Shown here: one piece after another, positions 25,544 through 50,808 of the stretch
Numbering within the stretch: position 1 is the first letter of the stretch
How the letters are laid out: each line of letters starts with the position of its first letter
Source: Tubulanus polymorphus
Lineage: Eukaryota; Animalia; Nemertea
NCBI RefSeq assembly: GCF_964204645.1
Contig: NC_134035.1
Location: 8,712,451 to 8,776,450, forward strand
Reading direction: 5' to 3'
Length of the DNA: 64,000 nt
Translations under genes and position numbers: made by a program
Notes under the pieces: generated by a model
The model's database searches: none
The model's input: the letters and a program-made list of their open reading frames with translations, nothing else
What the model was told of the DNA's origin: nothing

Positions 25544-28500
25544 ATGGCTTCAGTCGATATGAATCAAGGCGACGGGCGACTTTTGCGCACCATTCTGGAT
25601 ACCCAAGGTACCGACAGTTCCGCGAGTGCGACGAGTAGCGAACAGGACCAGCCAGAACCCTCGAGAAAGAAAACTCCCAGATCGGGCAGTTCAGAAAGCG
25701 AAAGCAGTGACAGTGAATCGACGCGTAGCGTTTCGTATCAGTCGAGCGACAGCAGCGACGATTCTGGAACGATCAAGTCCGATTCTTCCGATGATAGCGA
25801 GAATGATGATGATACAGTCAACGGAAAAGAGGAGCGAGTCGCTATAGATACAGATAAAGACACCGGCGACACGTTAGACAATGCTGACGTCGAGAACGTA
25901 TCCAGTAGATGTGCTAAAGATGAAACTGAGGGAGTAGATATCGTCGCGAAAGAGTCGGAATCTCCCAGAGTCGTCGAAGATGCTCAGTCTCCCAACGATG
26001 CGGTAAATGATGATAATCAAAAAGAACAATTCAACGATTTTATCGCTATAAACACCGTTGTTGCCGCTAATAGCGAAAAGTCGCAATCGAAACCTAAGAA
26101 ACCGAAACGTAAGCGTTCCAAAAGTGCCAAATATAGACAGGATGTGTTAGCGACTGGGTCGCTGTCTTCTGATAATTTTCGGTATTCGAAACACGAACGA
26201 GCGCAACGAGATGAACTGGCGATAGATGGCGTGGCAAATCGAAGGCGCAGGCGCAACGAGCAATCGGCTGCCCGAGGCGGCAGGCGAAAAACCGCGGACA
26301 CGTCTCCGGTACCCGTATCCAGCACGCTTTACCAGCCAGAACCAGCCAGCAATGACGATAAACTCCATATCAAATATCTCGAACTGATGTCGATTTTGAG
26401 ACAGACGGATCGACGAGCTTTTCGATCGTTACAATCAAGAGTCGTTCACATGTACGGCGAGAAAGTGAACAAATTCATGCCGGTCGAATCGTACCATGCG
26501 AAAAACAACAACAACGGATCGTGCAGTAACTACGTGAGGGTTCACGGAGCAGACGATTCCGTCGCTTCTACCGACAGATCCAGTAACCGCGACGAGTTCG
26601 TGTTCGTTCCGTCTATCGGTAAGAAGAATTCCCGCAGCCGACCGAAGACCGCAACCGCCAACGATAAAACGGATCGAGAATGCGGTAGTAAACCGAATCT
26701 CAGACGCAGTCGTTCGAATCTCGAAGCGAAGTATAAACATCTACAGGATCTACTGACCGAGCAATTCAAACACGAGTCTGAATCTTTGATTCGTAATCAA
26801 CTGAAACAAACAATCGACGTCGTGAAGCATTATCAGGAAGAACTGTGCAAAATAGACGATCGAGACGACGCTGCCGCCGAGGAAGCCGTGGACGAGGAAG
26901 AGACGGGATCCATAGATAGAACTGATAATCAGCAGCAGCAACAGCAGCATCGCCGCCGCCGCAACCACCGTAGACAGAGTGATACTAGTGACAGTGGTAC
27001 GCAAACACCTCGATCTGATGGTACAGGTGTTAATGATCATAATGACGATGAAAATGACGATGTGTTTAGCAAAGGAAGTGGTAAGTGTACATCGTAAATA
27101 ATGATATCGTTCTTACATCTTTATACGGTTATACAGTACATTCCCCTTTTGTGATTTTTATGTTCATATTTCTGACTCCTCTTTCTGCAGAACTAACAAG
27201 CAGCGAAAGTTCACTGTCGGCCTCAAAACGAGTGACATTTTCTGACGGTAATATCGAAGTTTCCGGTCGTTCGAACAGAGAGGAAAAGTCTGACGTAGGC
27301 ATTTTGAAGCGCCCGATCATCGTTGAAGTTAATGGTACGAGGCCTCGAGTTGGACGCCCCAAGAGACCAGACGCCCAAAGAGTACGTTCGCCGGAGAAGA
27401 CGAATAGCGGGGACTCCAATTTGCATCAAAGGCAACAATTCTACGGCTCCGATCACAGATTAGCCGACACCGATAACGAATCGATCTTAATTTGGTTGAA
27501 GGAGAAAAATAAACTACAAAAGCAACAGCGTAAACAAGAGCGAGCGAAGAAACGAAAGGAGCGACAACAACTGGCCGAAAAAGCAGCCGATCGACTTGAA
27601 CGAGAAAGCGAAGCGCACGATGCTATGTTGGGCTGGATGAAACGTAAGCGCCACGAAGAACAACTTCTTAAAAAGAGGAAGAAGAAAGAAAAGGAACGTC
27701 TTCGGAAAACTGAGGAATCGACCAGAGAGCCGGAGGAGACCAGTAATCGGCTGAAAACAGACCTTTCTTATAATTCTGGGAATTCTGCTGATGGAGTGAA
27801 TAGATTCGAAGCCGATCGCGTCGACAGTAGGTTCAGAGACGGCCCCACTAATGCTGAAATAGCGTCTAAACTATCTCACGGTGGTCGACCCCGATCTTCG
27901 TATACTTACAAAAGCGTTTCACAGAAAAAGGCGGCAAAACTCGCTATGGAGGAAGAGAAACGTAGACGGGATGAACTTCTCAAGAAGAGAATAGCGTACG
28001 ATCAGTGGCTGAAAGCGAAAGCCGAAGAAGCGATCAGACAAAGACGTAACGAGAAAAAGAAAGAAGCCGAAGAAGCGAATCGCGCGGATCCCGAATACGT
28101 CAAAATAATTCCCGATTTGGCCAAAAATCGATGCGAGAAAATCGATAGGAATAAAAAACGTATCGACACCGGTTTACCGGAAATAGATCGCCGGGCGAAT
28201 TCCTATCCGAGGCCGAAACGATCCGACCAAAATCAAGAACCGAAACAAACGACTGGTAACTATATTTGGAAAGAACCTAAACAAACGCGACCTCCGTCAT
28301 CGTCAAAACCGCGTTCGCCACGAACTGTTAAATCGCGTGATACCCCGGGTGCGATCCCCACCAGACATTGTATAGAGATCCCGGACCAGATAGCCGAAAA
28401 TACGTCGAAACCACCGCCACCAAACAACAAAACTAGACTGAACGATTTAACCAGTGAACTGTCGCCGAAACGACCGTCCTCCGCTCCTAGTGATCGTCCA

Positions 28501-28971
28501 TCATCGGGACGTCGTAAATGGACGTCTCCGACGCCGCTGCGCCAGTCTACCGAGCAAGGAGAGGAGTATTCCGAGTATATCAACGATAAGTTGAACGTCG
28601 AACGACCAGAGCCGCAAGGATGCGACCGACCCGAGGAACCGGTATGCAACAAAGCGCGGGATGAAAATGGTCATAGCGACGAATCGGTCCCAACGCCTCC
28701 ACCGACACCACCCGGTAAAAAGAAAGTATCGTTTGGCGCGTCGAAACTCGTCTACACGATGGACGATACGCCGTCGAGCGGGTCGTCAGACGTTACGCCG
28801 CCACCGGAGGAATCCGGAACTAAACGGGAGTCCGCCGATAACGATAGTTTAAGTCGCCAGTTGGACGATGTCATCAACGGCAGGAAGGATTACAATGAAA
28901 CCGATGCGCCTTTATTAAATAATGACGGTTTCTTTATTACATCCCTGTGCTCGGATGAGGATAGCGTTTAA
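25544..28971 (+). CDS. Large low-complexity, charged coiled-coil protein of CCDC181/CCDC34/MAP9 type; exons 25544-27080, 27191-28971; ~1105 aa
   Basis: Two long ORFs joined in phase by a 110-bp GT-AG intron. Repeated W-containing charged helices (IWLKEK, GWMKRK, AYDQWLKAK) are typical of the CCDC34/CCDC181 group. AATAAA at about 29063. Confidence 0.8.
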
Positions 28972-29512: not shown

Positions 29513-30541
29513 TCAAAGGGATGTTGAAACGGTATCATTCGTGGTTCTTTCCGACGATGGTTCTTCGTGTACGATATATCCGGGACAACATCGACAACGA
29601 CAGCAACAGCGACGGAAACAGTTTTTGTACGCATTTTTGATGTTCGTGTTCAAGAAACCGTAGATGATCGGATTGGTCGCGCAGCCCGCGTACGCCATTA
29701 ACATCGTCCATGTTAATACTTCATCGAGGTCTGCTGTCGTGTAAAAGTCAGCGATGATAGCTCCCGCAACCGGGTAGAATAGGATGACATAAACTACGAA
29801 CGCTAGTAACAATACGGCTACCGCTCTTGTCTTGGCGTTCAGTCGTTTGCTGCTGCGGAAGACTGTATCTACGTTTCCCGACTGCGCTCGTCTGCCATAC
29901 TTCGTCCTGTTTGTCGTCGACGATGACGTATTTGCCGGCGGCCGGGGTTTAGACACAGCCGGTCCGGATTTCCTGATCTTTCTAATCACCATCGTATACA
30001 AACCGAGATTGATGAACGACGGAACCAAGACTCCGACTATGATCATAATCACCGCGAATGTCGGATATCGACGATCTATCGAACAGAGTTTAACTCGCTC
30101 GTCGTACGAATACACGACCCAACCCAAAGTAGCCGATCCTACGACCAACACCAGGCTGAATAGCCATATTCCTACGGTTATCAAAATAACATTTCGGCGG
30201 TTGAAAATCCTGCTGTACGCGTTCGGCCAGCATATCTTCACGTACCGATTCGTGGCTATAGCCGTTTGGCCGAAAAACGACACGAAAAAAGTCACGTACA
30301 TACACGTGCCGGCCGTCGTGCAGACGAGATTGCTGCCGTGATCGATGGAACGCCTTCCGAGGGTTCTCCTGGTTGCTGCGAGGACCAGACTCACCAGCAG
30401 GTCAGACGTCGCTACTACGATGATGAAAATGTTCGTCGAAGTTTGAATTCGTTTCGTCAACGCGAACACTGTTATCAGCGAGGTGTTACCGAATATGACG
30501 AACAGAGTCGTGATGATTTGTACGATGTCGTTTGCGCCCAT
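29513..30541 (-). CDS. Class A GPCR with intronless CDS, melatonin-receptor/Moody-Tre1-like (NRY type), 342 aa
   Basis: Seven hydrophobic segments; GN in TM1, D in TM2, TNRYVKIC in TM3, NPIIY in TM7; Cys-rich C-tail. Confidence 0.9.
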   Translation of the reverse strand: MGANDIVQIITTLFVIFGNTSLITVFALTKRIQTSTNIFIIVVATSDLLVSLVLAATRRTLGRRSIDHGSNLVCTTAGTCMYVTFFVSFFGQTAIATNRYVKICWPNAYSRIFNRRNVILITVGIWLFSLVLVVGSATLGWVVYSYDERVKLCSIDRRYPTFAVIMIIVGVLVPSFINLGLYTMVIRKIRKSGPAVSKPRPPANTSSSTTNRTKYGRRAQSGNVDTVFRSSKRLNAKTRAVAVLLLAFVVYVILFYPVAGAIIADFYTTADLDEVLTWTMLMAYAGCATNPIIYGFLNTNIKNAYKNCFRRCCCRCRCCPGYIVHEEPSSERTTNDTVSTSL

Positions 30542-35780: not shown

Positions 35781-36612
35781 ATCAGATGTTTGTCGTTTGG
35801 TTAGTCATACCGGGAGGAGACACAAACACACGCGGAAACACTCCCGGATATACGGCTTATGAACGGGATGTATTTATTTCATCGTGACCTCGTGGGAGGG
35901 TGGGGCATTGTTGAATTGACCATTCAGCGGAAAATCGCATAGTCTGGGCAGTTTTTATCCGTATCTAGGTATACGGACTCAAGATGTTCAAGTGCCCTTT
36001 GGAAAATAGAGAAAAAAAACATAAACGCATCAAATACCCGATGTACTATCAAATACATCGGGTTCGGATAAACAAAATACGATGTATTTGTTGCACTGAC
36101 CAGTCTGATTGCAACATGGTCGCATGGGGCTTTTTGGATGAACATATGAAACTTACGCAATAAGTGAATCAAGTCAATTCTGAAAATGAAATAGCCACGT
36201 TCAACACAAGTATACCGTGCAGCAGAGTTTTTGAATCATAAGAGTCCAACCCACGTTTTGGGAAATACTTCCGTCAATGAATTATATGAATTCTTACAAC
36301 GATTCCCTTCGCGATAGAAGCGGCTATTCCTATAAAATATTTTGAAATACGAGATGCTCGAATCTGACGATTGCGTGTACGAAAATTGCAGCGCGCGTGG
36401 ACACCTGTGAAATTGAAAAATTCTTGTTGATTGAATCAAGATTTACCACAAAAACAACTCGATTTTATTACAATTCATTATATGGCGATTAATATCATTC
36501 ATCAAGTATAGATAATTTGATTAAAGTTTCCTGAGATTGCTCTGCCGTGTATCACGACCTGGTTATTATTGAAATGGATTCGTTTCGTGTTATTTGAGAT
36601 AATGATGTAATA

Positions 36613-36645
36613 ATTACTCGAGTAATGACACAGATCGAGTATAAA
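36613..36645 (+). promoter_or_regulatory. Promoter of amidohydrolase copy A: palindrome ATTACTCGAGTAAT plus TATA box
   Basis: TATAAA at 36640 lies ahead of a non-coding exon ending at donor 36730|gtggg. The same arrangement occurs at copy B. Confidence 0.5.
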
Positions 36646-37089
36646 GACGCTTGTTACTTCACGCAAGTCTTCGTCGAAAAGCTTCGTCTTCTTGGAGAAA
36701 TATCAACCGCAAGAGCTGATACATCGTTAGGTGGGTTCGACGCATCATTGAGATTTTCAGTTATCAGTGTCGATATTACCGTATCGACGTTATGACTATG
36801 TATTTCGAACACATCACATGCATATCACATGTTATTTGGCTGATATACAAATGGTAAATTATTTCATTAAAAGATAGTACTCCAAATTATAAATTCCATT
36901 AGTACGATATCCATAAGAGTAGTTTTAAGCCTGAAATACCCTCCACCCTGATACAATACTTATTCAGCAAAATTCGGCAAAATAGTAACATCACTAAAGA
37001 GATGGTTGCCTAAATTGCCAACTCATTCTTGGGCCTTTTTTAAAGAAAGTTTTCTCGATGTATAAAAGATTGGAGTTTTCTTTGTAGAA

Positions 37090-40023
37090 ATGGACGTTGA
37101 TTTTCTACGCTCACTAATACTGGTGATTATATCAGTTTCTGTCGTCGATTCAAATCGTAAGTTTGATAAAAATTCATTCTTTACATTCCGAAATCTAAAT
37201 GACAATTTATCACGTACCAATGTTAATGATTTCTGAAATGTATTGATTATTACGATTAGTTTATTCGCCGTGTGGTAATTATCCATTCGTACGGAATTCG
37301 GCCGGAGCCGAGATCATCGCTGATTGTGATGTAGCCGATAGATTCATGGAGGTGAAATATACCTGCCAAGACGGCTACACATTACGAGACGATGTTGATA
37401 CGATAAAGTGTGATGAAAATACGGGTCGCTGGTCGCCGAAACCGGCGTGCTGTAAAGGTTCGTATTTATGGAATAGAACCAACTCTTTAGCTTTAACTTC
37501 TTTATAAAAGAATAACACGTTTTTCGGGATTTTCTAATTTCGTATTTTTTGAGTAATTCTCTGAGCTTTCTTTCCAAAGACATCGTCTAAGCACATCTAG
37601 ATCCTGTTGCTATATTGGTAGAGGATCTTATCTGTATACGAAATATTCAACATCTGTTTGATATGCTACGGATCAAACTCTTGGCCCGAAATAGCCAATT
37701 CCTTTTCGGATCCACTCTAGAGTCGAAATATTCCTACGCAACTAACGACGACATAAAATATTTCAACATACGTCTATTAAAGTACTGTGGCTGGGACTTG
37801 GTCAGTAACAGATTTATTTTAGGTGCAGTTTTTAATGAGTTAATCAGGTGAATGGTTCCCATTGACCGGATTGAAGTTACGTAACATAACATATAAACAC
37901 TATACATTACTAAAAACTTTATTCAAAAAAATCATTCAGCAATAGATCTACCTAAGTGTAGAATTATAAGATCGGACTGGGGCCAGGAAACTAAGCACTC
38001 CACACATGATTTTTAGTTAAAATATAAAACCTGCAATCACGAGATCAAAAAGTTATTCAACAAACAAAAAGCCAAACAAGAAAACTCCCCTGCCCTTAAA
38101 AGATTCAGGGATGTATTTCTCAATATAATGAATTGATATGTTTATGTCTGTATTTCTATTAGATGGCATTACTGACTGTATATCCAGACGTTCTATAAGT
38201 AACGGATACCGCGCGTCTCATACGGATAAAACATGCGGAGGATCAGTGAACTACGCTTGCAGTGATTCTTACAGACTATTCGGAAATCACTTGGTCACCT
38301 GCGAATACGAAGCCGATACAAATACAAACGTCTGGTCAAATCGTCCGTTTTGCATCCGTAAATATATTTACGAGTAAAATTAATTTCTCTCTTCACTGGA
38401 GAAGAAAAAAATGTGTGAATTTATTTGGACATACTGAGAACGAATAAACTGTTGATATTTGAGATATCGTCTTCACGTTTTTCAGAAAATGCTGATAAGA
38501 TGCAACTCACTCCAAGTCGCTACGTCGCATATATAAAAGGAGATAGTCGGCTTATGCTGACGTAAGTAAACGTTTTGCCAGATAAATCTTATTCGTTTAC
38601 TCCTCTGTATATTGGACATTTCGATTGCTATTACATACATTTTCGTTTATTCTAATTTTCTTGGGATGCCATAACCATTTCCTCTAGTTAAACGAAACTA
38701 AACTCAACTCAGAAAAAAGTCTCAGTATCCAATCAAAATTTCCAGAGTCCCACACGGCGGTTATATCAGAGCGGATGAGATAACACCACGGGTAGAAGCA
38801 GCGTGCCTGGATTCGAGCGATAATTGTCAATATATCGAAGGTTGCAGTAATCCTGAATCCGATAGTGTTTGTAAGAAACGTAAAATTTTGTCCGTAAGTA
38901 TTATAGGCAAAGTTTTAACCCAAACCCAGTAAATTTGCTTCGTACCTAGATATCTTGAATTCGTTCAGGATTCGTGTACGATGGAAATTACTTTCGATGT
39001 CGCTCACTACTTAAAAGAAGACTTTAACATCTCGGCGACGGTAGTTGCGATTTTAATGCATCGGAGTCGACTGGATGCGAATCGGTATCCCGACGAAGGA
39101 CCTTATGAACACGAGCGTGAAGCTGCTAAAAAAGCTTTCGAAGAATACGCGGATATCATAAAATCGGTGAGACACTTATTGACATATAAAATATTGGAAT
39201 TGTTTATTAATATGAAATTGATATTTTGCGTGAAGAACTTGTAGAAAATATGCAGAATTGATTTCTTAATTTTTTGTTATTTATTTACAGATGATAAACA
39301 CTACCCCGGATAAAAGTGGTCTGTTGCTGGACGTACATGGACATGCACAGAATTCATGGTTGCAGCTTGGTTACACTATATCTTCCTCCGAATTGAGCAG
39401 TAGTTCTCCCGATCCGAATAAATCTTCGATTAGAAACTTGTTCGGTAAATACAACTCAAAAACCGGACGCGATTTCAAAAGCTTACTTATCGGAGACAAG
39501 AGTTTCGGGTAAGAAACATACATAGAGCTCCACACTAGCTGGGGAAAACTATCCCATTTTATACGAGATCTTATTCCAAACGTTTACCTTGGTATCAGGT
39601 GAGATCGGGCTGCTGAATAGCTGATGTTCGAATCTAAATCTTTATCGTGAACCCTCAACTTATCACATTGGTTCAGCATACAACTATGTTCTTAGTCTTG
39701 AGATGGTTTAAAATCAATAGTTTTTTAATGGACATTTTGTGTATATTTCTAGTCACTATCTACAACAAGAGAACACGCCCGTCGATTCAATACCGTCACC
39801 TAAATATCCAACACAGGAAAGCGACGACAATAAACGAACGTACACCCTAACCGGCGGTTATACCACTCAGAGATATGGACGCGATCACCCAACTTTTAGC
39901 GCTATCCAACTCGAATTCCCGAAATCAGTCCGGGATTCTTCGAATGACTGCAAGGATACCGATAACTATCGCAGGAAGGTCTCAGCCGCTATTGCTGCCT
40001 TTTACAAGTATCATTACGAATAG
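37090..40023 (+). CDS. Secreted sushi-sushi-N-formylglutamate-amidohydrolase-like protein, copy A; exons 37090-37156, 37260-37457, 38163-38357, 38486-38561, 38746-38893, 38969-39166, 39291-39508, 39753-40023; 456 aa
   Basis: Signal peptide MDVDFLRSLILVIISVSVVDS. Two phase-1 CCP exons (C...YTCQDGYTL...KC..GRWSPKPAC; C...YACSDSYRLFG...TC...WSNRPFC). Enzyme motifs TVPHGG, DSCT, HRSRLDANR, LLDVHGH, QLGY, GGYTT..YG, AIQLEFP. All eight exons splice in frame. Confidence 0.85.
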
Positions 40024-40270
40024 AAATGTCCTCTCTCCTATTTCATCTTAGTGTATGAGAATAGATTATAAGAATAAACTCCAATCAAACGGCAAATAAG
40101 AAAAACTAAAATTATCTTTTGGTAGTTTTTTTTGTTTATATTCGAAGTTTGAATAACGTAGTATCACAACTTTAACTGACACTGACATTTATCATGATGT
40201 TCCAATCAATAAATGGCATAGATCTTACAAAGAACTGCGTCAGTTTATCTTCATTCTAACGAACAATTTT

Positions 40271-42082
40271 CTAGTCGATCTGGATAAGAATCATGATGAT
40301 GTAGTTGATTAGCAAGTCGGTGTAGTTCAACCACGTAAACGATTCACCGGTAGGTCTGGTTTTCGAGCACTTGTTATTATACCACCATCCACCGCCTATC
40401 AACGACGCGCAGTTCTGTTCGTCTGAATTATCATTATCCTCGTCGAACGTGCTGAAATACGAGCCATTGAAATCTAGATCCCGGTCGGTCGTATTGATCT
40501 GAGACAGCACCCAGCTCGCTTTGAACGACGCCTTGTACTTGTTCGACTCGTTTGCTACGCGGAAATGTTCGCAAAAACTCTGAAGCAACTTGTCTTCGAT
40601 AATGACATCGATTTTCAGCATGAAATGCTTTTCCGGGTTCGAATTGACGATCATGTATAGATTTTCGTTACCGAGCCAATAACTGCGAACTCCAGTACCG
40701 AATCCGTATTTGTACTCGACCCACGATCTGTTGAATCCGCCATTGCTGTAACGGGACAGGACGATAGTGGCGCAAGTTCGCGCGTACTCGAAAAAATAGC
40801 ACAACACACTAACTGATGACGGCGATAACCGAGGCTTTATAAACACCGTTCTATAACCAGCGGTTGAAAATGTACCAGCTCTTACGTAATCATCACATTC
40901 TGAAATGAAAATATATCAAGTTAGGCTAAAAACGATACCTTGTTTCTCCTAGAATATGCACATGCTTAATGGTTACAAGTTTTTAACTTCTCCTGGTATC
41001 CATCGACTTATATTACATTACCGTATTATTATCTGTAATTTTCTAATGTAATTTAATTCATAAATAAAGAATAATAATATAATTTGTAATCAGTTCATTT
41101 CCATAGCTGCCGGGTCTGTTATGGTTAGTTAGCTCGATCATGATTTTTAAAAAGTTCAAGTTCGGCAAAAATGAGAAACAAGGTATAAATCTTTTTTAAC
41201 CTTATTTGATATAGTTCTATCACCTTCAGAGGCGTTCTGTTCTTCGTTAACGCGTAATGGTTCCATCCTCCTATTTTGAGGTCCAATGTGATAAACTCAA
41301 AACTGTTTGGAGTATGATTTGACTTCAGAGTTAAATAAAACATTGGAAATGAACTATTTTCAGAAAAAAAAACTTCACAGTTGAAATGGTTCCTGATTTA
41401 TCGAATTCGCGTAGAATGAAGTCGGGTGTTATCATATTTTTACCTGTAGCCAGTATTTCACATTTCTGCCCGGTGTAAGATGGTGCACATATGCATGACA
41501 TACCAGTACGATTCAGCGTTCCTCCATTCAGACAGGGGTTATCCTAAAGATTTCGACAAACGTACATTTTATAGATACGGTAAGGTACATTAGACATGTA
41601 ATACTACTAGACGAAGGACTGCTTCGAAGCAACGGTTAGCTTATGTACAAGAAAGCAGCCCTAGAAAAGATAGAAAATACAATAAGGTAAAGAGGTGAGA
41701 AGAATAATTGAATAGGAAACGAAAAGGAACGACTTACCAAATAAAATGTCTTCCAACCGCTTCTGTCAGCCTCGCACCGCGAATCAGAAGCGGTATCTTG
41801 CAGCTGTTGACAGTTGTTGGTTGTCTCAGTTTTTGAGAATTTAATTCCCTTACATCGATCGTGAATTGCGCAGTATCTCGTACACTCGATCAGACTCCGA
41901 GCAGTTGTTATTAGACTCCTCCTGGTCGCGGTCGATGCTACGTTTATTGCCGGTTGAACGACGCATTGTGTCCTGCGAAAATGCAGTCGCGCTACGTCAA
42001 GAGGAGCGAAGTCTGCAAATACTCGAGCGCACAGAGTGCTAGCATACATAAGCGTTAATGAAAGAAATTTGCAATTGAACAT
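40271..42082 (-). CDS. Secreted PAN/apple-EGF-fibrinogen-related (FReD) protein; exons 42082-41738, 41543-41444, 40899-40271; 357 aa
   Basis: Signal peptide; PAN-like SLIECTRYCAIHDRCKGIKFS...CQ; EGF-like NPCLNGGT...CICAPSYTGQKC; FBG motifs FNRSWVEYKYGFG, YWLGNE, FSTFDEDND, CA..GGGWWY..C. Phases are consistent. Confidence 0.88.
40924..41201. mobile_element. Harbinger-type MITE (TTA TSD) in the FReD-gene intron
   Basis: tta|ggctaaaaacgataccttgtttctc ... gagaaacaaggtataaatcttttttaacc|tta. A second copy lies at 61620-61838. Confidence 0.7.
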
Positions 42083-42723
42083 CTTCAGGTGAAAGTAGGA
42101 CCTTTAAGAAATGCAAGATTCCAATCCAGAGGCTAACTAATGACTGAATGGCACACGTTTTGTTCCAACGATTTTATCAATGTAGTTTTTCTGTTTTGCC
42201 CGTTAAACTGAAAGAGCGATTTATCCCAAGTTGTCAGAACACGAGAACAATGCAAATTTGCGAGATAATCTATGATTCAAATCGAGCTCATAAATTTCAC
42301 ATTAATCCAAACGTATTGATGTTTAATGGCGTGACGTTTGTAACCCAAGTATCTTACGTATACAAATCTTATATTCATGCTTGGGTCTCACAAGTTTTAG
42401 CAAACCATGTAAAAGAATTACATGAATTCTTACAACTTCCTCGTGAAAGAGGTATACTTTACGCTAAAACATAAGATCCTTAAATTGGTCGATTGTATGT
42501 GCGAAAATGTTTTTAGCACGCGTGGACACCTGCGAAATTGAAAAATTCTTGTCGATTTAATAAAGATTTACCACGAAAAAACGATTGTATTACAAGAATG
42601 ATTTATATCGTACATGTTATAGACGATTTGATTAAAGAATCCTGATATTTTTCTCTGCCTCGCATCACGATTCGGTTATTGAAAATTGATCTATTTCGTG
42701 TTATATTTGATAATGATGTGATA

Positions 42724-42780
42724 ATTACTCGAGTAATGGCACAGATCGTTTCGTTAATATCGAGTATGTAATGTATAAAA
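42724..42780 (+). promoter_or_regulatory. Promoter of amidohydrolase copy B, in the region shared head-to-head with the FReD gene
   Basis: ATTACTCGAGTAAT at 42724, TATAAAA at 42774, non-coding exon donor at 42866|gtggg. Confidence 0.5.
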
Positions 42781-43213
42781 AGACGCTTGTTACTTCACGC
42801 AAGTCTTTATCGAAAAGCTTCGTCTTCTTGGAGAAATATCAACCGCAAGAGCTGATACACCGTTAGGTGGGTTCATCGAAAACTATCATTATTTTCAGTT
42901 ATCAGATATGTTCGCCGTTTCGGTGTTATGTCCATTTTTAGGCCTCTTTTTCACCTCTATCACGTAATACAGACTGTAGTATGAACTTAAACATATCATT
43001 GAAACATAGTTCTAATGTCGTTCTAATGCAATTTTTAAAAAAGAAAGAAATGCTATGAAGAATAATAGAAGTATTTTGTAGGCCTGAATAGCCTCCGCTC
43101 TTACTCTACAAAATGATAACGTCACTAGCCTAAAGATGCTAGCTTAATTTGCCGATTGTTTCTCGGAAATTTCTTGGTTTTCTCAATGTATAACAGATAG
43201 CAATTTTTCAGAA

Positions 43214-46200
43214 ATGGACGTTGGTTTTCTACACTCGCTGATACTGGTAGTGATATCAGTTTCTGCCGTCGATTCAAGGCGTAAGTTCGATAAACATTCA
43301 TTCTTAACATTCCGAGATGTGAACGACAAACTATCACGTACCAATGTGAATAATTTCTGAAATGTATTGATTTTTACAAATAGTTTATTCGCCGTGTGGT
43401 AATTATCCATTCGTACGGAATTCGGCCGCAGCTCAGATCATCGCTGATTGTGATGTAGCTGATAGATTCATTGAGGTGAAATATACCTGCCAAGACGGTT
43501 ACACATTACGAGACGATGTCGATACGATAAAGTGCGATGAAAATACGGGTCGCTGGTCGCCGAAACCGGCGTGCTGTAAAGGTTCGTGTCAGTATCGATA
43601 TGATTATAAGGAATGGAATATGGAGCATTCATAACTTTCAGTTCTTTATGAAAGTATTCCCCAAAGACACGTAAAGACACATTTTTCTTAGAATTGTCTA
43701 CGAGTTTTTCCGATCAGAATTATTTCTCGGGGATTCCTTGCACATATATAAGATTCACGGTGAACAAAAACACTGACCGAAATTTAAAAAAAGAAAATAC
43801 CCCTGGTGTCCCCGGGATGTATCCTTAGTTAGATTTGTGGAAAGAAATATTGCCCAATTGTCTAAATACATCTCAATCCAGTTTCTAAATATGAAGAGTG
43901 GAATCGGGTCCCATCCGTATACAAAACTACACCATATGTTTGATAATAAAATGATGTGTATATTGCTGTATTTCTATTAGATGGTATTACTGATTGTACA
44001 TCCAGACGTTCTATAAGTAACGGATACCGCGCGTCTTATACAGATAAAACATGCGGAGGATCAGTGAACTACGCTTGCAGTGATTCTTACAGACTATTCG
44101 GAAATCACTTGGTCACCTGCGAATACGACGCCGATACAAGTACAAACATCTGGTCAAATCGTCCGTTTTGCATCAGTAAATATATTCGTGATGATAAATG
44201 ATCAATTTTTTCTCTTCGCTGAAATGAATAGATAGTGGACATTTCGATGAATAATATAGAAATGATAGATCACTTACAAAAAGTCTGAAAGTCTGTAAGC
44301 CTGCCAATGCGCCTGAAAGAAGTATCTCTAAGGGGAGTGGCCTGGAAATGGAAAGATTAACTCGTTATATCGGGGGGACGAAACTGCATAAAATCGGTAG
44401 ACTTAACTGAGAATAAATCAACAGTAGATATTTGAGATATCGTCTTTCAGAAAATGCCGATAAGATGCAACTCACTCCAAGTCGCTACGTCGCATATATA
44501 AAAGGAGATAGTCGGCTTATGCTGACGTAAGTAAAAGTTTTAACTGGTTTATTTTCATTCGACGTCTTTTTTCCGATAAACGTTTTTATTGACTTGTCTA
44601 TTTGACATGCGGGTTGCCTGAGGTAGCCCGCAAAGTTTACACGTGTCACAGTTATATTCCTTCAAATGACAGTCAACTAACTGCGATGTTTTTACATCAG
44701 TTGACTTCTTGCACTTGGCGAATTCGCGCATTACCTTTATATAATCCAGAAAAATATCCATTTGATATTTCCAGAGCCCCTCACGGCGGTTATAACAGAG
44801 CGGATGAGATAACACCACGAGTAGAAGCAGCGTGCCTGGATTCGAGCGGGAATTGTCAATATATTGAAGGTTGCAGTGATCCTGTATCCGATAATGTTTG
44901 TGAGAAACGTAGAATTTTGTCTGTAAGTATGGGCGAAGTATGGTGGCTGATAAGGCCCAAATACAATAATTTTCACTCGACCTCGAAATAATAGAAAAAC
45001 ACAAAAAGAAACTTATAGAGCAAAAACGAACTTTTCGTTATTGCTAGGGCGCAAAAACGAAATATTATAGAGCAAAAACGAACATATTCGTTTTTGCTCT
45101 GTGATTTTTCGTTTTTGCGCCCTAGCAAAAACAATAATTCAATAGAGCAAAAACGAAAGTTCGTTTTTGCTAGGGCGCAAAAACGAATAATATGGAGCAA
45201 AAATAAAAAATCATAGAGCAAAAACTAATATTTTCGTTTTTGCGCTATAATATTTCGTTTTTGCGCGTTAAAATTCGTTTTTGCGGGGTAGCAAAAACGA
45301 ATTTTATGGCGCAAAAACGAAAATTCGTAGAGCAAAAACGTTTTTTTTCGTTTTTGCGCTATAATATTTCGTTTTTGCTCTATAGGTTTCGTTTTGCATT
45401 TTTCTATAATCGAGGTCGTGTAAAAATTAATGCATTTGGCCCTTATCAGCCACCATAGTGAAGTCTTCACCCAAAACCCAGTAAATGATTATAGATCAAA
45501 CAAATCCTATTGAATTCGTTCAGGATTCGTGTACGATGGAAATTACTTTCGACGTCGCTCACTACTTGAAAGAAGATTTCAACATCTCGGTAACGGTGGC
45601 TGCAATTTTACTGCATCGCAGTCGACTGGACGCGAATCGTTATCCAGACGAAGGACCTTATGAACACGAACGCGAAGCTGCTAAGAAAGCTTTCGATGAA
45701 TACACGGACATCATAGAATCGGTGAGAGATTTTTGTAAATTTGACAATATTGAAAATATTGGATAATAGTTCTTGAGTAGGTAATAGATTTCCTGCTTGA
45801 AGAACTTGTAGAAAATACACCAGAAGAAACTAATAGAAAATTGACTTTGTAAAATGGTTGAAATGAGGAAAACGGAGAACGCATATTTTTCACGGTATAA
45901 ATATCTTTATTTTTGATTATTTAGATGATAAACAGCAGCGCGGATAAACGTGGTATAATGCTGGACATGCATGCACAGGCGAAGAATTCGTGGTTGCAGC
46001 TTGGTTACACTATATCTTCCTCTGCTTTGAACAATGGATCCCCCGATCCGAATAAATCTTCAATTAAAAACTTGTTCGAAAAATACAACTCTAAAACCGG
46101 ACGCGATTTCAAAAGCCTACTGAACGGAGATAAGAGTTTCGGGTAAGAGAAACTATTAATCGAATATCAACATAAACCCACCGTCCTGACAAGGTCATTA

Positions 46201-46834
46201 GTCCAGGGTATCCTCGCTTGCAAGGGTTTGATTACCTACCGCCGAAGCTACCTTGGCCAAAGACCTTCTTTGGTCTATTTATGGACTTAAGTCCATGGTC
46301 TATTACACCGCCCAGGATTTCTTGGGTGAGCCGGTTGCCGCTAAGCGGCCACCAGTTTATATATGTATTATAAGCGATTAGATACGAAAATTAGTCCAGG
46401 GGTTTTTTCACCATGAGGTGAGATCAGACTAGGCTGCCTAAGAGCGAATTTGTGTCTTTATCGCAGACCTTGAAGGTATCACTATGTTCAATACCGGCTT
46501 CATTTTTATCGTCGTAATAATCCATGATCTTAATGCAACGTTTTTTTGTGTATCTTCTAGTCACTATCTACAAGAAAACATACCCGTTGATATAATCCCG
46601 TCACCCAAATATCCAACACAGGATAGCGACGACAATGATCCGAAGCGAGCATACTCACTAACCGGTCATTATTTCTGTAAGGTCTATGGACGCGATCATC
46701 CGACTTTTAGTGCCATCCAGTTGGAAATACCGAAATCAATGCGGGATTCTTCGAACGACTGCCAGGATACCGATAACTATCGCAGGAAGGTCGCAGCCGC
46801 TATAGCCGCTTTTTACAAGTATCATTACGAATAG
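43214..46834 (+). CDS. Secreted sushi-sushi-N-formylglutamate-amidohydrolase-like protein, copy B; exons 43214-43280, 43384-43581, 43981-44175, 44451-44526, 44775-44922, 45524-45721, 45925-46142, 46561-46834; 457 aa
   Basis: Exon-for-exon paralog of copy A with motifs APHGG, DSCT, HRSRLDANR, MLDMHAQ, GHYFC, AIQLEIP. Confidence 0.85.
44939..45457. mobile_element. Foldback MITE with TATGG...CCATA termini and a 6-bp TSD (IS3EU-like)
   Basis: About 60-bp imperfect TIRs TATGGTGGCTGATAAGG.CCAAAT.CA.TAATTTT; flanks gcgaag / gtgaag; interior made of GCAAAAACGAA repeats in both orientations. Absent from the equivalent intron of copy A. Confidence 0.8.
46280..46297. mobile_element. Micro-hairpin insertion/footprint with 7-bp TSD
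   Basis: gtctatt [tatggacttaagtccatg] gtctatt. Confidence 0.7.
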
Positions 46835-48368
46835 AAACGTCCTCTCTCTTATTTCATCTTAGTGTATGAGAATAGATAATAAGAATAAACTACAATCTCT
46901 AAACAGCAAATAAGAAAAAGTAAAACTATATTTTGTTTTTTTTTTGTTTATATTCGAAGTTGGAAACCTTGCTGATTTATTGCAGTTATTATAAATGTAA
47001 CCATTATGTAACTTATAAAGCGTATTACTATTTCATAATCAACTGTAATCTATTCAGGAATAAAGATAGTATAGTTATAGTAGGAATAACGTGAACCTGC
47101 AATACAACTTTATCAGACACCGACACTATTGATTATATCCGTTCTAATCGGGACTGTATTTTCCCGTATCTCATTGAAGTAGATCCAGATCGATACACAT
47201 TTATCAGAAAGTACGTGATGGTATTAAACTTGTTTGCGACAGGTGTATTTTATTCCGTACAATAGAAATCATAATGTCAACGGTAAAAACGGTAGAAGAC
47301 ATCTGCTGTGTATTCATACTTATCAATTAGATCTACAATAAATCGGGTATAATATAGTCACGCCGTATACACAAATCTGTAAATTGTGAGTTTGCCTATA
47401 TAGGTAAAAAGCACATTCATCTCTGAAAATGGGGTTTCGTTCTGTCTGTCAGGTTTAATATATTCAGGTTCAACAAACGATATGTTTAGGAGATATTTAC
47501 TGTTTTTCCTAGTGGCACTATTCATCTCACGTAAGTAGGGCAATATACAGAGATCGATCCCGGCTTCGCCTTCCGTGTCGTTGATATGAAGAGAAACCCT
47601 TATTCTCGTGAACTGTCTGTCTGTCAGCAGTCAGTGTCTGTCTTACAGCAACTTACTTTCGTAAATAATAAGTCGGTCTTGAAGAAACTTGGGTACGGGG
47701 GTCTAGTCATGCAGTGCAAAAAATAGGCCCAGTGCGATGTTTAGCTACGAAACTAGGCACTAGAAACTCTTTTTCATGGAAGTGACCTTGAAGATGACCT
47801 CCAAACTGAGGAACAGGTTTGAAATTCAAAAAGTCGACAAAATTTGGCCATGGGTCCGCGATACAACAAATCAAAAATGCAATGGGAACTTACGCGTGGT
47901 AATTTCGGAGTTTGAGTCTGAACCCGAGAACTGCTGTCGCCTATGTACAGGATAATCGGAATAACTTTTTTGGATGCGAAGTGAGAACTGTGTTCTGAAT
48001 GCAAAATAACATCGTTCGACGGAACCATGTCGCGGGTTCATCGACCAATATAATGAGAATTCATGATTGACTGATCCAGCTCCTTATTTAGCTCCAGTTC
48101 AAAATAGAAATATAACCTGATTGTTTTCCATCTGACTGGCAAAAATAAGCCTAACGATAACAAAGATACGTGGACGTTGCAAAGACGTTTTTATCTTTTT
48201 CGTATGAGTTCTACAGACGTTACGTATGATTTAAACAATATTGCTCTAGATAAGGGTCACTCGACATGCGTAGATTTTTTCCAATATTTCGAACCATATA
48301 TTCGATATCAATTTTTACCCGTTTGAACGAAGTTTGTATCATTAGTAAACAAATAGTTAATCAACTCA

Positions 48369-48743
48369 TAAGATAAAAACCCACTATTTACAAATTAAAA
48401 GAAATCAAAAATCGAGAATTTATTAATTGAAACAATCTAAAATAAGAACACGACGTACACCTGACGATGATCTCTAGTGTGAGATCGTAACGTCGTGTTC
48501 TTATAGAGACTAGAGATTCACGCGGTTTGAATGTTGCTGTAACTGTCAAAATCCATTCATGGACAGATGAAATAAGATACAACACACATCACGGATAGTT
48601 TTTAAAAAAAGAGAAAAAAATGACCCAACAATACGGGACAAAAGTACCCTAACAAAATGGCGGCTAGCAACTGTAAAATGGTTTATTAATAAATTCACGA
48701 TTTTAGATTTCTTTTAATTTGTAAATAGTGGGTTTTTATCTTA
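48369..48743. repeat. Element bounded by ~58-bp inverted repeats
   Basis: taagataaaaacccactatttacaaattaaaagaaatc.aaaatcg.gaatttattaat and its reverse complement at about 48685-48743. Confidence 0.7.
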
Positions 48744-48830
48744 TCATCTGTTCATCTCGTTTGAGTGTGGTTATCGTACCATTAGTTAATCAACCCGTTT
48801 GAAACGAAATAAGAAGCCAATTCGCCGGAA

Positions 48831-50808
48831 ATGCGTATGTTATTTTTTTCAGAATATTCCACGTTGTTATATCTGCTTTCGACGTGTCGCGTTTATTGGA
48901 ACAAGAAACTACCTCGGGATATCAGAATATCCAAATACTCAGCAGGTATATTATACTTACACTTTACACGCTACTAAATAGTGTTTATGAAATACCCAGT
49001 TATTTATGAGACGTCTTTATCAACTCTTTTACCTAAGAAATGGAAAAAGTCACACTGTTGAGTCGAACTCCGAGTCGCTACGTGGCATACAGACAAGGCG
49101 ATAGTCAACTCATATTGACGTAAATATCATTAGATTTGAGATGGATTCTAAAGGTTACCGGACCCCTTTGATCTTTTTTCATGTTATCGACTTAGTACTA
49201 TATTGTACTTCGGGGGCTGCGGTGACGTAGACCAGTTTTTCATAAAGCCAGACCTAAAAGTTCTGCGCTGTTTGTATATCTATAGATGAAACTAAATATT
49301 TTCCCATATATGTAGTTTCTGTACTTTTGTTTTGAGTCCAAGGGAGTTTTATACCCGTTATTCAAAGTGCATCCTACACTGCAACTATTTCAGAGCTCCT
49401 CACGGAGGTTATAATAGGGCTGATGATATCCGACGACGTGTAAGGAAGGGCTGCCGTAATGGAAGTTTTTGTTACAACGATAAGGCTGTACGTGACGTAT
49501 TCCAAAGGAATTATAGTTTGGGTATTCGTAATTTCAACTGGTGCAACTGGTCTTTGGAGAAGAGCCCGATTGTTATATTTTCAGGATTCGTGCACTATTG
49601 AAATGACTCTCGCAATTGCTCATTATCTGAAGGTCGATCATGATATTCGAGCGACTGTTGTTTTAATGCTGTTACATCGCAGTCGACTGGATGCGAATCG
49701 TTACGAGGACCAGGATCGTTACGAGGACGAACAGAAAGCCGCTGAAACGGTTTTTGACGAATACACTGACATCATAAAATCGGTGAGACGGGAGCACATC
49801 AGCTCCATACAATTTGTATTTAACCGAAATTAATAGCTTTAGTATGACAGAAATTGTCTTCATAGAATAGCTTCATAGAATAGGTACGCACTGCGAAATG
49901 CACTGTTCAAACGACCACCATATTAAATCAGTCAGTGAACTTATTGAATTTGTATTGGAATTGAATACGCAGGATCTGATGACGTCGCCATTTTATGTAT
50001 ATATTGCGTTTAAGAAAATATTTTGACGCCGGTCATATCCTTACTTATAAATGACTTATCTATTGGAATTGCATATCCTGAATGTTAACGTTACATGCAT
50101 ATAATGTTATATGCATGCACGCTATCATAGTTATTGCTCCTGGTTGTGGGGTTTTCCACTTACTTTCGTTTTAGGCCATAAGCAGAACTAGCGGCAAAAA
50201 CGGTCTCATATTGGATATACACGGTCATTTACGGAACAACTGGGTCCAGATGGGATATGCTGTTCCGTCGCGATTACTGAATCGTGGAAAAATCGACTCG
50301 AACCATACGTCGATAAGAAACCTATACAGAACGTATCGTAGAAAAACCGGCCGTGGTTTTAAGAGTTTGTTGAGCGGGGATAAGAGTTTGGGGTAAGAAA
50401 TCGTGAAATAAGACATTCATTTTCTCATTTAGATCGTTGTGCTTTTTACATTTAACAAACAGTCTAGTATTCCGCAAATATTATTCGACTAGGTTTTGAT
50501 CAACGATAATCATCATTACAATGTTTTCTAGTCACTATCTACAACAAGAGAACACGCGCGTTGATTTAATACCGTCACCTAAATATCCAACGCAGGAAAG
50601 CGACGACAATAACCCGAAACGAACGTACACACTAACCGGCGGTTACACCAGTAAGGTGTATGGACGCGATCATCCGACTTTTAACGCTATCCAGCTCGAA
50701 TTCCCGAAATCAGTCCGGGATCAGCCGAACGGGTGCCAAGATGTGAATGACTATCGCAGGAAGGTCGCGGCCGCGATTTCCGCATTTTATCGCTATCATT
50801 TTGAATAG
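48831..50808 (+). CDS. N-formylglutamate-amidohydrolase-like protein, copy C (no sushi domains); exons 48831-48945 (tentative), 49038-49119, 49394-49487, 49585-49782, 50175-50392, 50532-50808; ~327 aa
   Basis: Motifs RYVAYRQGDSQLILT|APHGG, DSCT, LHRSRLDANR, ILDIHGH, QMGY, GGYTSKVYG, AIQLEFP, with the same intron positions as copies A and B. The first exon MRMLFFSEYSTLLYLLSTC is in phase but less certain; Met 49040 is an alternative start. Confidence 0.8.

Follow-up and report, generated by a model that had tools for sequence, protein, structure and literature searches.

We regard it as probable that a 64,000-nucleotide stretch of the genome of the nemertean Tubulanus polymorphus (contig NC_134035.1, here C11, positions 8,712,451 to 8,776,450 of the forward strand) holds a tandem array of three paralogs of expressed type, here called copies A, B, and C, and that their products are extracellular enzymes from a poorly known branch of the FGase family (Pfam PF05013), with a fold like that of the zinc carboxypeptidases. 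This whole stretch is referred to as the window, and positions are counted from its first letter. In copies A and B, the enzyme domain would be preceded by a signal peptide and two sushi, or complement control protein (CCP), modules. An initial annotation, made from the letters of the window alone, had placed such a gene family at 36600-50808. The three copies do lie there; nothing coding was found in 36600-37089, and copy A begins at 37090.

The gene models (Table 1) were rebuilt from open frames, tblastn searches with stored relatives, and the genomic alignment of copy A with copy B; these two copies were analysed one exon at a time and by way of the stored proteins P0001, P0010, and P0003. 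Copy A has eight exons (37090-40023, plus strand), whose 1371 coding nucleotides give the 456 residues stated in the initial annotation. Copy B also has eight exons (43214-46834, plus strand) and 457 residues. Copy C has seven (47482-50808, plus strand); its 336 residues are identical to RefSeq XP_074660561 (LOC141913022, P0010), to which it maps exon by exon at 100%. In all three copies every intron is of the GT..AG type, every exon is free of stops, and every split codon is sense. The claim that the paralogs share intron positions was borne out, as the enzyme part has four introns, each of which interrupts A, B, C, and a chromosome 8 paralog (P0003) at the same alignment column and in the same phase. 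Copy C has a hydrophobic N-terminus unlike that of A and B, a shortened Cys-rich insert, and no sushi module; a search upstream of it for a relic sushi exon found none.

Copies A and B share 81-99% identity in exons (85% in exon 1) and 53-86% in introns. The ratio of nonsynonymous to synonymous divergence (dN/dS) between them comes to 0.32 over the signal, sushi, and linker exons and to 0.24 over those of the enzyme, so that both halves of these genes are under purifying selection; taken over exons 1-3 of copy B, it ranges from 0.15 to 0.66. Because synonymous divergence is lower in the 5′ part (~0.12) than in the 3′ part (~0.38), the data suggest that the 5′ part was gene-converted or that the two parts are of different ages. 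Intron 5 of copy B (44922 to 45524) is 601 nucleotides long, versus 75 in copy A, and includes at 45156-45395 a 114-nucleotide unit that is present twice and is itself made of 21-nucleotide units.

The signal exon and the two phase-1 sushi exons ascribed to copies A and B are recovered in both. Exon 1 encodes a 12-residue hydrophobic core, with 10-residue Kyte-Doolittle means of 3.25 in A and 2.98 in B, and is predicted to be a signal peptide. Each of the next two exons (198 and 195 nucleotides, both phase 1-1) carries one module with the C..C..C..W..C frame plus extra cysteines, at 6 and 5 cysteines per exon. With the Pfam Sushi model (PF00084, gathering cut-off 20.7 bits), module 1 scores 32.6 bits in A (E = 1.1e-7) and 32.0 in B (E = 1.7e-7), whereas module 2 lies just below the cut-off (20.2 bits, E = 8e-4, and 20.6 bits, E = 6e-4, respectively). 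The chromosome 8 paralog P0003 matches Sushi at 48.9 bits across two stretches. RefSeq gives this gene (LOC141909816, isoforms XP_074656555 and XP_074656554) the architecture signal, two sushi, enzyme, that is, the same one that had been read in the window and that the sequence of copies A and B fits.

We class the enzyme domain as a divergent member of the FGase superfamily and not as an ortholog of HutG. The AlphaFold model of copy C has a mean predicted local distance difference test score (pLDDT) of 85.3, and its top Foldseek matches are two solved FGase-family structures, 2q7s and 2odf. In VIA-align the model superposes on 2q7s with Z = 17.4 (root-mean-square deviation 3.4, 213 aligned residues) and on 2odf with Z = 16.9 (202 aligned residues), whereas M14 carboxypeptidases and the phage poly-gamma-glutamate hydrolase PghP reach at most 12.5, some 4.5 Z units under the FGase structures. 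Among 42 aligned relatives, 30 match the Pfam FGase model at E ≤ 0.01 (best E = 6.3e-11), the Tubulanus proteins being unmatched. The assignment to FGase made in the initial annotation is thus supported by the predicted fold and, transitively, by the Pfam relatives. Exon 8 of copy A, used as a phmmer query against 1.8 billion representative proteins, gave nine matches, including P0001, P0003 (470 residues), and P0005. The last, encoded on an ENA contig of 2.5 Mb, is a 600-residue protein of eukaryote-like origin; it has a signal peptide, followed by a tandem pair of FGase-like domains that both contain the Cys-rich insert. Neighbours in the ESM Atlas are bacterial clusters named FGase, often fused to cadherin-like, He_PIG, Big_2, or type IX secretion system (T9SS) modules. 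A profile comparison by hhalign with a bacterial PF05013 protein (L086) gave a weak match (E = 5.7e-4, probability 29%), in which the PHGG, D-x-C-T-x-E-M, D-x-N-R, and D-x-H motifs are in register. When single exons of A, B, and C were searched with Pfam, Sushi was found and FGase was not; a six-frame PF05013 search of the T. polymorphus genome (268 Mb, 77 contigs) gave no match. Sequence searches of the PDB with copy C, the family profile, and the bacterial profile returned T9SS tails and no FGase match, and exact look-ups of P0001 and P0082 returned nothing.

All the motifs listed in the initial annotation are present in the three copies, with the variants DMHAQ (for D-x-HGH) and GHY (for GGY) in copy B. 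Across animals and bacteria, the positions that are invariant or conserved at 90% or more are, in copy C numbering, H78, R90, D107, T110, R138, D142, N144, R145, E149, D186, H188, G189, G199, Y200, G281, G282, Y283, Q299, E301, and R307. M14 enzymes bind their metal with two histidines and an acidic ligand, hold the substrate carboxylate with an Asn-Arg pair, and use a glutamate as general base. By analogy, a metal may be held here by the His of PHGG, the Asp or Glu of D-x-x-T-x-E, and the His of D-x-H, while the Arg, Asn, and Arg of R-S-R-L-D-A-N-R and the Tyr of GGY would hold the free carboxylate of the substrate, and the Glu of A-I-Q-x-E would be the general base. The domain would then be a metal-dependent amidohydrolase. 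One could argue instead that catalysis has been lost, in copy B if not in all copies, and that the domain has become a binding module. The two substitutions of copy B do affect nearly invariant glycines, and between A and B divergence is greater in the 3′ exons than in the 5′ ones. Yet the presumed catalytic residues (the His of PHGG, the Asp of D-S-C-T, R..D-A-N-R, the His of D-x-H, the Tyr, and the Glu of Q-x-E) are all retained in A, B, and C, dN/dS over the enzyme exons is 0.24, and Gln replaces the second His of HGH in several vertebrate orthologs as well. We therefore consider a loss of catalysis quite unlikely.

Several observations weigh against our main reading. The RefSeq model of copy B (LOC141913021, P0001, 299 residues), to which our enzyme part maps exon by exon at 100% from an internal methionine onwards, begins at that methionine and lacks the signal and sushi exons, and in the protein collection we found no sushi-bearing product of copy A or B. 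No sequencing run is recorded as RNA, and the RNA-like evidence is that of the contigs of run X3, which are taken as cDNA-like because introns with GT..AG ends are skipped in them. These contigs leave exons 4 and 5 of copy A without coverage, and the sushi-to-enzyme junction is therefore not seen in them. The sushi part of the full-length P0003 model has a pLDDT of ~30, because the alignment is shallow there. As for the enzyme, the Pfam FGase model (gathering cut-off 28.9 bits) does not match P0010 or P0001 and gives P0003 15.2 bits, which is below the cut-off, and the putative metal ligands are assigned by motif analogy. In the gene neighbourhoods of bacterial relatives, the most recurrent neighbour family occurs in at most 7 of 80 loci and no family keeps a fixed position, so that there is no operon clue to the substrate. 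Finally, the animal/Bacteroidota branch has no paper and no assayed member; the literature yielded nothing on secreted or animal FGase-like proteins, nor on this gene in papers on Tubulanus.

The splicing of the sushi exons to the enzyme exons, as claimed in the initial annotation, is thus a probable one. The X3 contigs contain three junctions of copy A, of which 39166/39291 and 39508/39753 are exactly as modelled, and 37457/38163 is also exact but has only 20 letters on the exon 2 side. Exon 3 is covered with no mismatch, and one contig extends to 40176, beyond the stop codon. Under an alternative view, the signal and sushi exons of A and B make a separate small secreted protein of two CCP modules, and the enzyme starts without a signal peptide at the methionine of exon 4. 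This is how RefSeq starts copy B, and the equivalent methionine is present in exon 4 of copy A. If the intron is retained, a stop is met six codons past exon 3, and no RNA contig bridges exons 3, 4, and 5. Against this view, exon 3 exits in phase 1 and exon 4 enters in phase 1, with the AG acceptor of exon 4 kept in A and B, and both copy C and P0003 use the homologous acceptor as an internal one. Between A and B, exon 4 has 98.7% identity, which extends to the bases ahead of the methionine. Moreover, the enzyme domain looks extracellular, since it contains a four-Cys insert and every animal relative examined has a signal peptide, so that a cytosolic form would be odd. For these reasons we infer that exons 3 and 4 are joined in copies A and B, and hold two separate proteins to be unlikely. 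This would correct the RefSeq annotation, in which the copy B model omits both the signal and the sushi exons.

Relatives of the enzyme are numerous. With P0003 and a frog relative as queries, the matches include uncharacterised proteins of ~300 residues with signal peptides from many amphibians, from birds, and from a crocodile and a lungfish, comparable annelid proteins (Owenia and Paralvinella), and hundreds of bacterial proteins, at 30-35% identity, many of which have PF05013 and a T9SS sorting tail. There was none from mammals or teleosts among the best 120 rows, which is no proof of absence. The initial annotation had set the exported enzyme beside the cytosolic bacterial members; export is no innovation of this locus, as the closest relatives are secreted animal proteins and T9SS proteins of Bacteroidota. 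Many animals have the enzyme family, for which UniRef and the ESM Atlas already carry the automatic name N-formylglutamate amidohydrolase. The rare part is the sushi fusion, which is lineage-specific in that it was found in T. polymorphus only, the chromosome 8 paralog being its sole other case; searches with each half of P0003 turned up no further sushi-bearing relative.

A tree was made with a quick method from 54 rows picked by hand from the matches, most of which were omitted, with Shimodaira-Hasegawa-like approximate likelihood-ratio test (SH-aLRT) supports and a midpoint root that serves for drawing only. All bacterial rows form one clade (95), as do the vertebrates (99), which follow the species tree. 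The Tubulanus proteins are a single long-branched clade (100), split into a C11 pair and a C8 pair. This bears on the idea that the genes encode genuine HutG enzymes of histidine catabolism, or stem from bacterial contamination or from a transfer of very recent date. The automatic name given to the relatives in some sources would agree with it, and so would the bacterial relatives themselves at the identity given above. Against it, the genes have seven or eight exons with spliceosomal introns, one of them at a position (L-G | H/Y) common to Tubulanus and an Owenia gene, and they lie within a 14-Mb chromosome-scale contig, flanked by animal genes. The bacterial rows stand apart in the tree, the vertebrate branching is that of the species, and signal peptides with disulfide-rich inserts speak against a cytosolic catabolic role. 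Contamination and recent transfer are rejected on introns, chromosomal context, and tree, and the idea as a whole is highly improbable.

The T. polymorphus genome has five loci of this family, the three of the window and an inverted pair on contig C8 (C8:13118458-13123381). The two genes of that pair are head to head and 91% identical; one is the full-length two-sushi gene P0003 and the other, P0060, is truncated, beginning in the linker exon and lacking a signal peptide. Sushi-bearing genes thus occur in both Tubulanus subclades, and because of this the simplest history is one fusion and two losses. The fusion would have arisen once in the nemertean lineage, before the split between chromosomes 8 and 11, and would have been lost later by copy C and by the truncated chromosome 8 copy. 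As to the origin of the domain itself, the frog ortholog (L084 1001-1918, Pelodytes ibericus) is a single exon with no intron, and in a gene of Owenia fusiformis (L085 9793-10650) a signal exon is followed by a single exon that encodes the enzyme domain in full. Five introns interrupt a second Owenia gene (L083), including the one in common with Tubulanus. Given the intronless frog gene and the single-exon domain in Owenia, an old bacterial origin of the animal genes is possible.

The chemistry known in PF05013 is the hydrolysis of small glutamyl amides, N-formyl-Glu and gamma-glutamyl-glycine; the family also includes a gamma-glutamyl-glycine amidohydrolase (PMC9397018). A canonical-type PF05013 gene in a Flavobacteria genome (L086 183-3199) lies between an open frame resembling an ATP-grasp ligase and one with a QEGLA motif, both identified by eye; if this reading of the neighbours is right, the setting fits glutamyl-amide chemistry. 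The Tubulanus proteins may cleave, outside the cell, a small amide of the N-acyl or gamma-glutamyl type next to a free carboxylate, with the two sushi modules tethering the enzyme to a surface or a ligand. Going further is speculative. We suggest, with little confidence, that the animal/Bacteroidota branch comprises extracellular amidases acting on microbial or mucus-borne glutamyl or N-acyl compounds, and that the nemertean CCP modules turn the enzyme into a recognition-coupled effector in mucus or body fluid; gamma-glutamyl or iso-glutamyl links and N-formyl or N-acyl amino acids are examples of substrates that we name just as tentatively. If this is true, animals, though apparently not mammals, would have a class of defence or digestive enzymes that has so far gone unrecognised. 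The finding points to a whole secreted FGase-like family in amphibians, birds, a crocodile, a lungfish, annelids, and a nemertean, whose closest kin are exported bacterial proteins, and the sushi fusion hints at a target that must be bound outside the cell. Identifying the substrate would give a function to hundreds of entries named uncharacterized protein and could show whether animals acquired the enzyme from bacteria.

Table 1. Exons of the three genes of the array, with positions counted from the first letter of the window
Feature	Position	Strand	Content
Copy A exon 1	37090-37156	+	Start codon and predicted signal peptide; donor phase 1
Copy A exon 2	37260-37457	+	Sushi/CCP module 1; 198 nucleotides, phase 1-1
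Copy A exon 3	38163-38357	+	Sushi/CCP module 2; 195 nucleotides, phase 1-1
Copy A exon 4	38486-38561	+	76 nucleotides; linker and first beta-strand of the enzyme domain
Copy A exon 5	38746-38893	+	PHGG motif and four-Cys insert
Copy A exon 6	38969-39166	+	D-x-x-T-x-E and HRSRLDANR motifs
Copy A exon 7	39291-39508	+	DVHGH and LGY motifs
Copy A exon 8	39753-40023	+	GGY and AIQLE motifs; stop codon
Copy B exon 1	43214-43280	+	Predicted signal peptide
Copy B exon 2	43384-43581	+	Sushi 1
Copy B exon 3	43981-44175	+	Sushi 2
Copy B exons 4-8	44451-44526, 44775-44922, 45524-45721, 45925-46142, 46561-46834	+	Enzyme part
Copy C exons	47482-47530, 48853-48945, 49038-49119, 49394-49487, 49585-49782, 50175-50392, 50532-50808	+	Spliced model

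Other genes are found within and upstream of the array. Between copies A and B, and head to head with the latter, a minus-strand gene (40271-43214) matches Pfam Fibrinogen_C (E = 2e-23) and, weakly, PAN (E = 0.001), and has an EGF-like exon. Inside this fibrinogen-related gene, 40940-41200 is a high-copy repeat with a contig depth of ~800 in run X1, where many variant contigs join at 40951/41081. The side features upstream of the array, at 25544-28971 and 29513-30541, are a long low-complexity coding region of the plus strand, rich in Ser, Lys, and Glu, which accounts for a local peak of AT skew, and an uninterrupted minus-strand open frame of 342 residues that by eye resembles a seven-helix receptor.

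The proteins of the window can be compared with five sets of known systems. With the FGase family as represented by 2q7s of Ralstonia and 2odf (Atu2144) of Agrobacterium, they have in common the fold and the order of the motifs (His, Asp-x-x-Thr-x-Glu, Arg..Asp-x-Asn-Arg, Asp-x-His). They differ in having only 9-14% identity with these two structures, in being secreted, as predicted, with a Cys-rich insert, in having no link to histidine-utilisation genes, and in lying beyond the reach of the Pfam model. The M14 metallocarboxypeptidases and PghP are alike at the level of the superfold (Z of 11-12.5), but the structural score is lower, there is no sequence similarity, and the H-x-x-E zinc motif of M14 is missing, with no conserved Glu at +3 after PHGG. 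The T9SS-tailed proteins of Bacteroidota and Ignavibacteria (Saprospiraceae and others) match over the catalytic domain with E of 1e-20 to 1e-26; they too are exported, and many are fusions with Ig-like modules or modules for extracellular binding. Where the window proteins have CCP modules at the N-terminus and a long Cys insert, these have a Por_Secre_tail at the C-terminus and a short C-x-G-C, and they form a separate clade. The secreted FGase-like proteins of animals (Xenopus laevis LOC108700207, Bufo bufo LOC121009228, and those of Owenia fusiformis) are 27-33% identical in the catalytic domain and have the signal peptide, the Cys-rich insert, and all the conserved columns, although those listed lack sushi modules and the Tubulanus branch is long. 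Lastly, LOC141909816 on C8 shares the architecture and the exon plan in full, with a signal exon, two sushi exons, a linker exon, and four exons for the enzyme, whereas its enzyme part is 39-44% identical to those of the window and it lies head to head with a truncated copy instead of in a tandem array.

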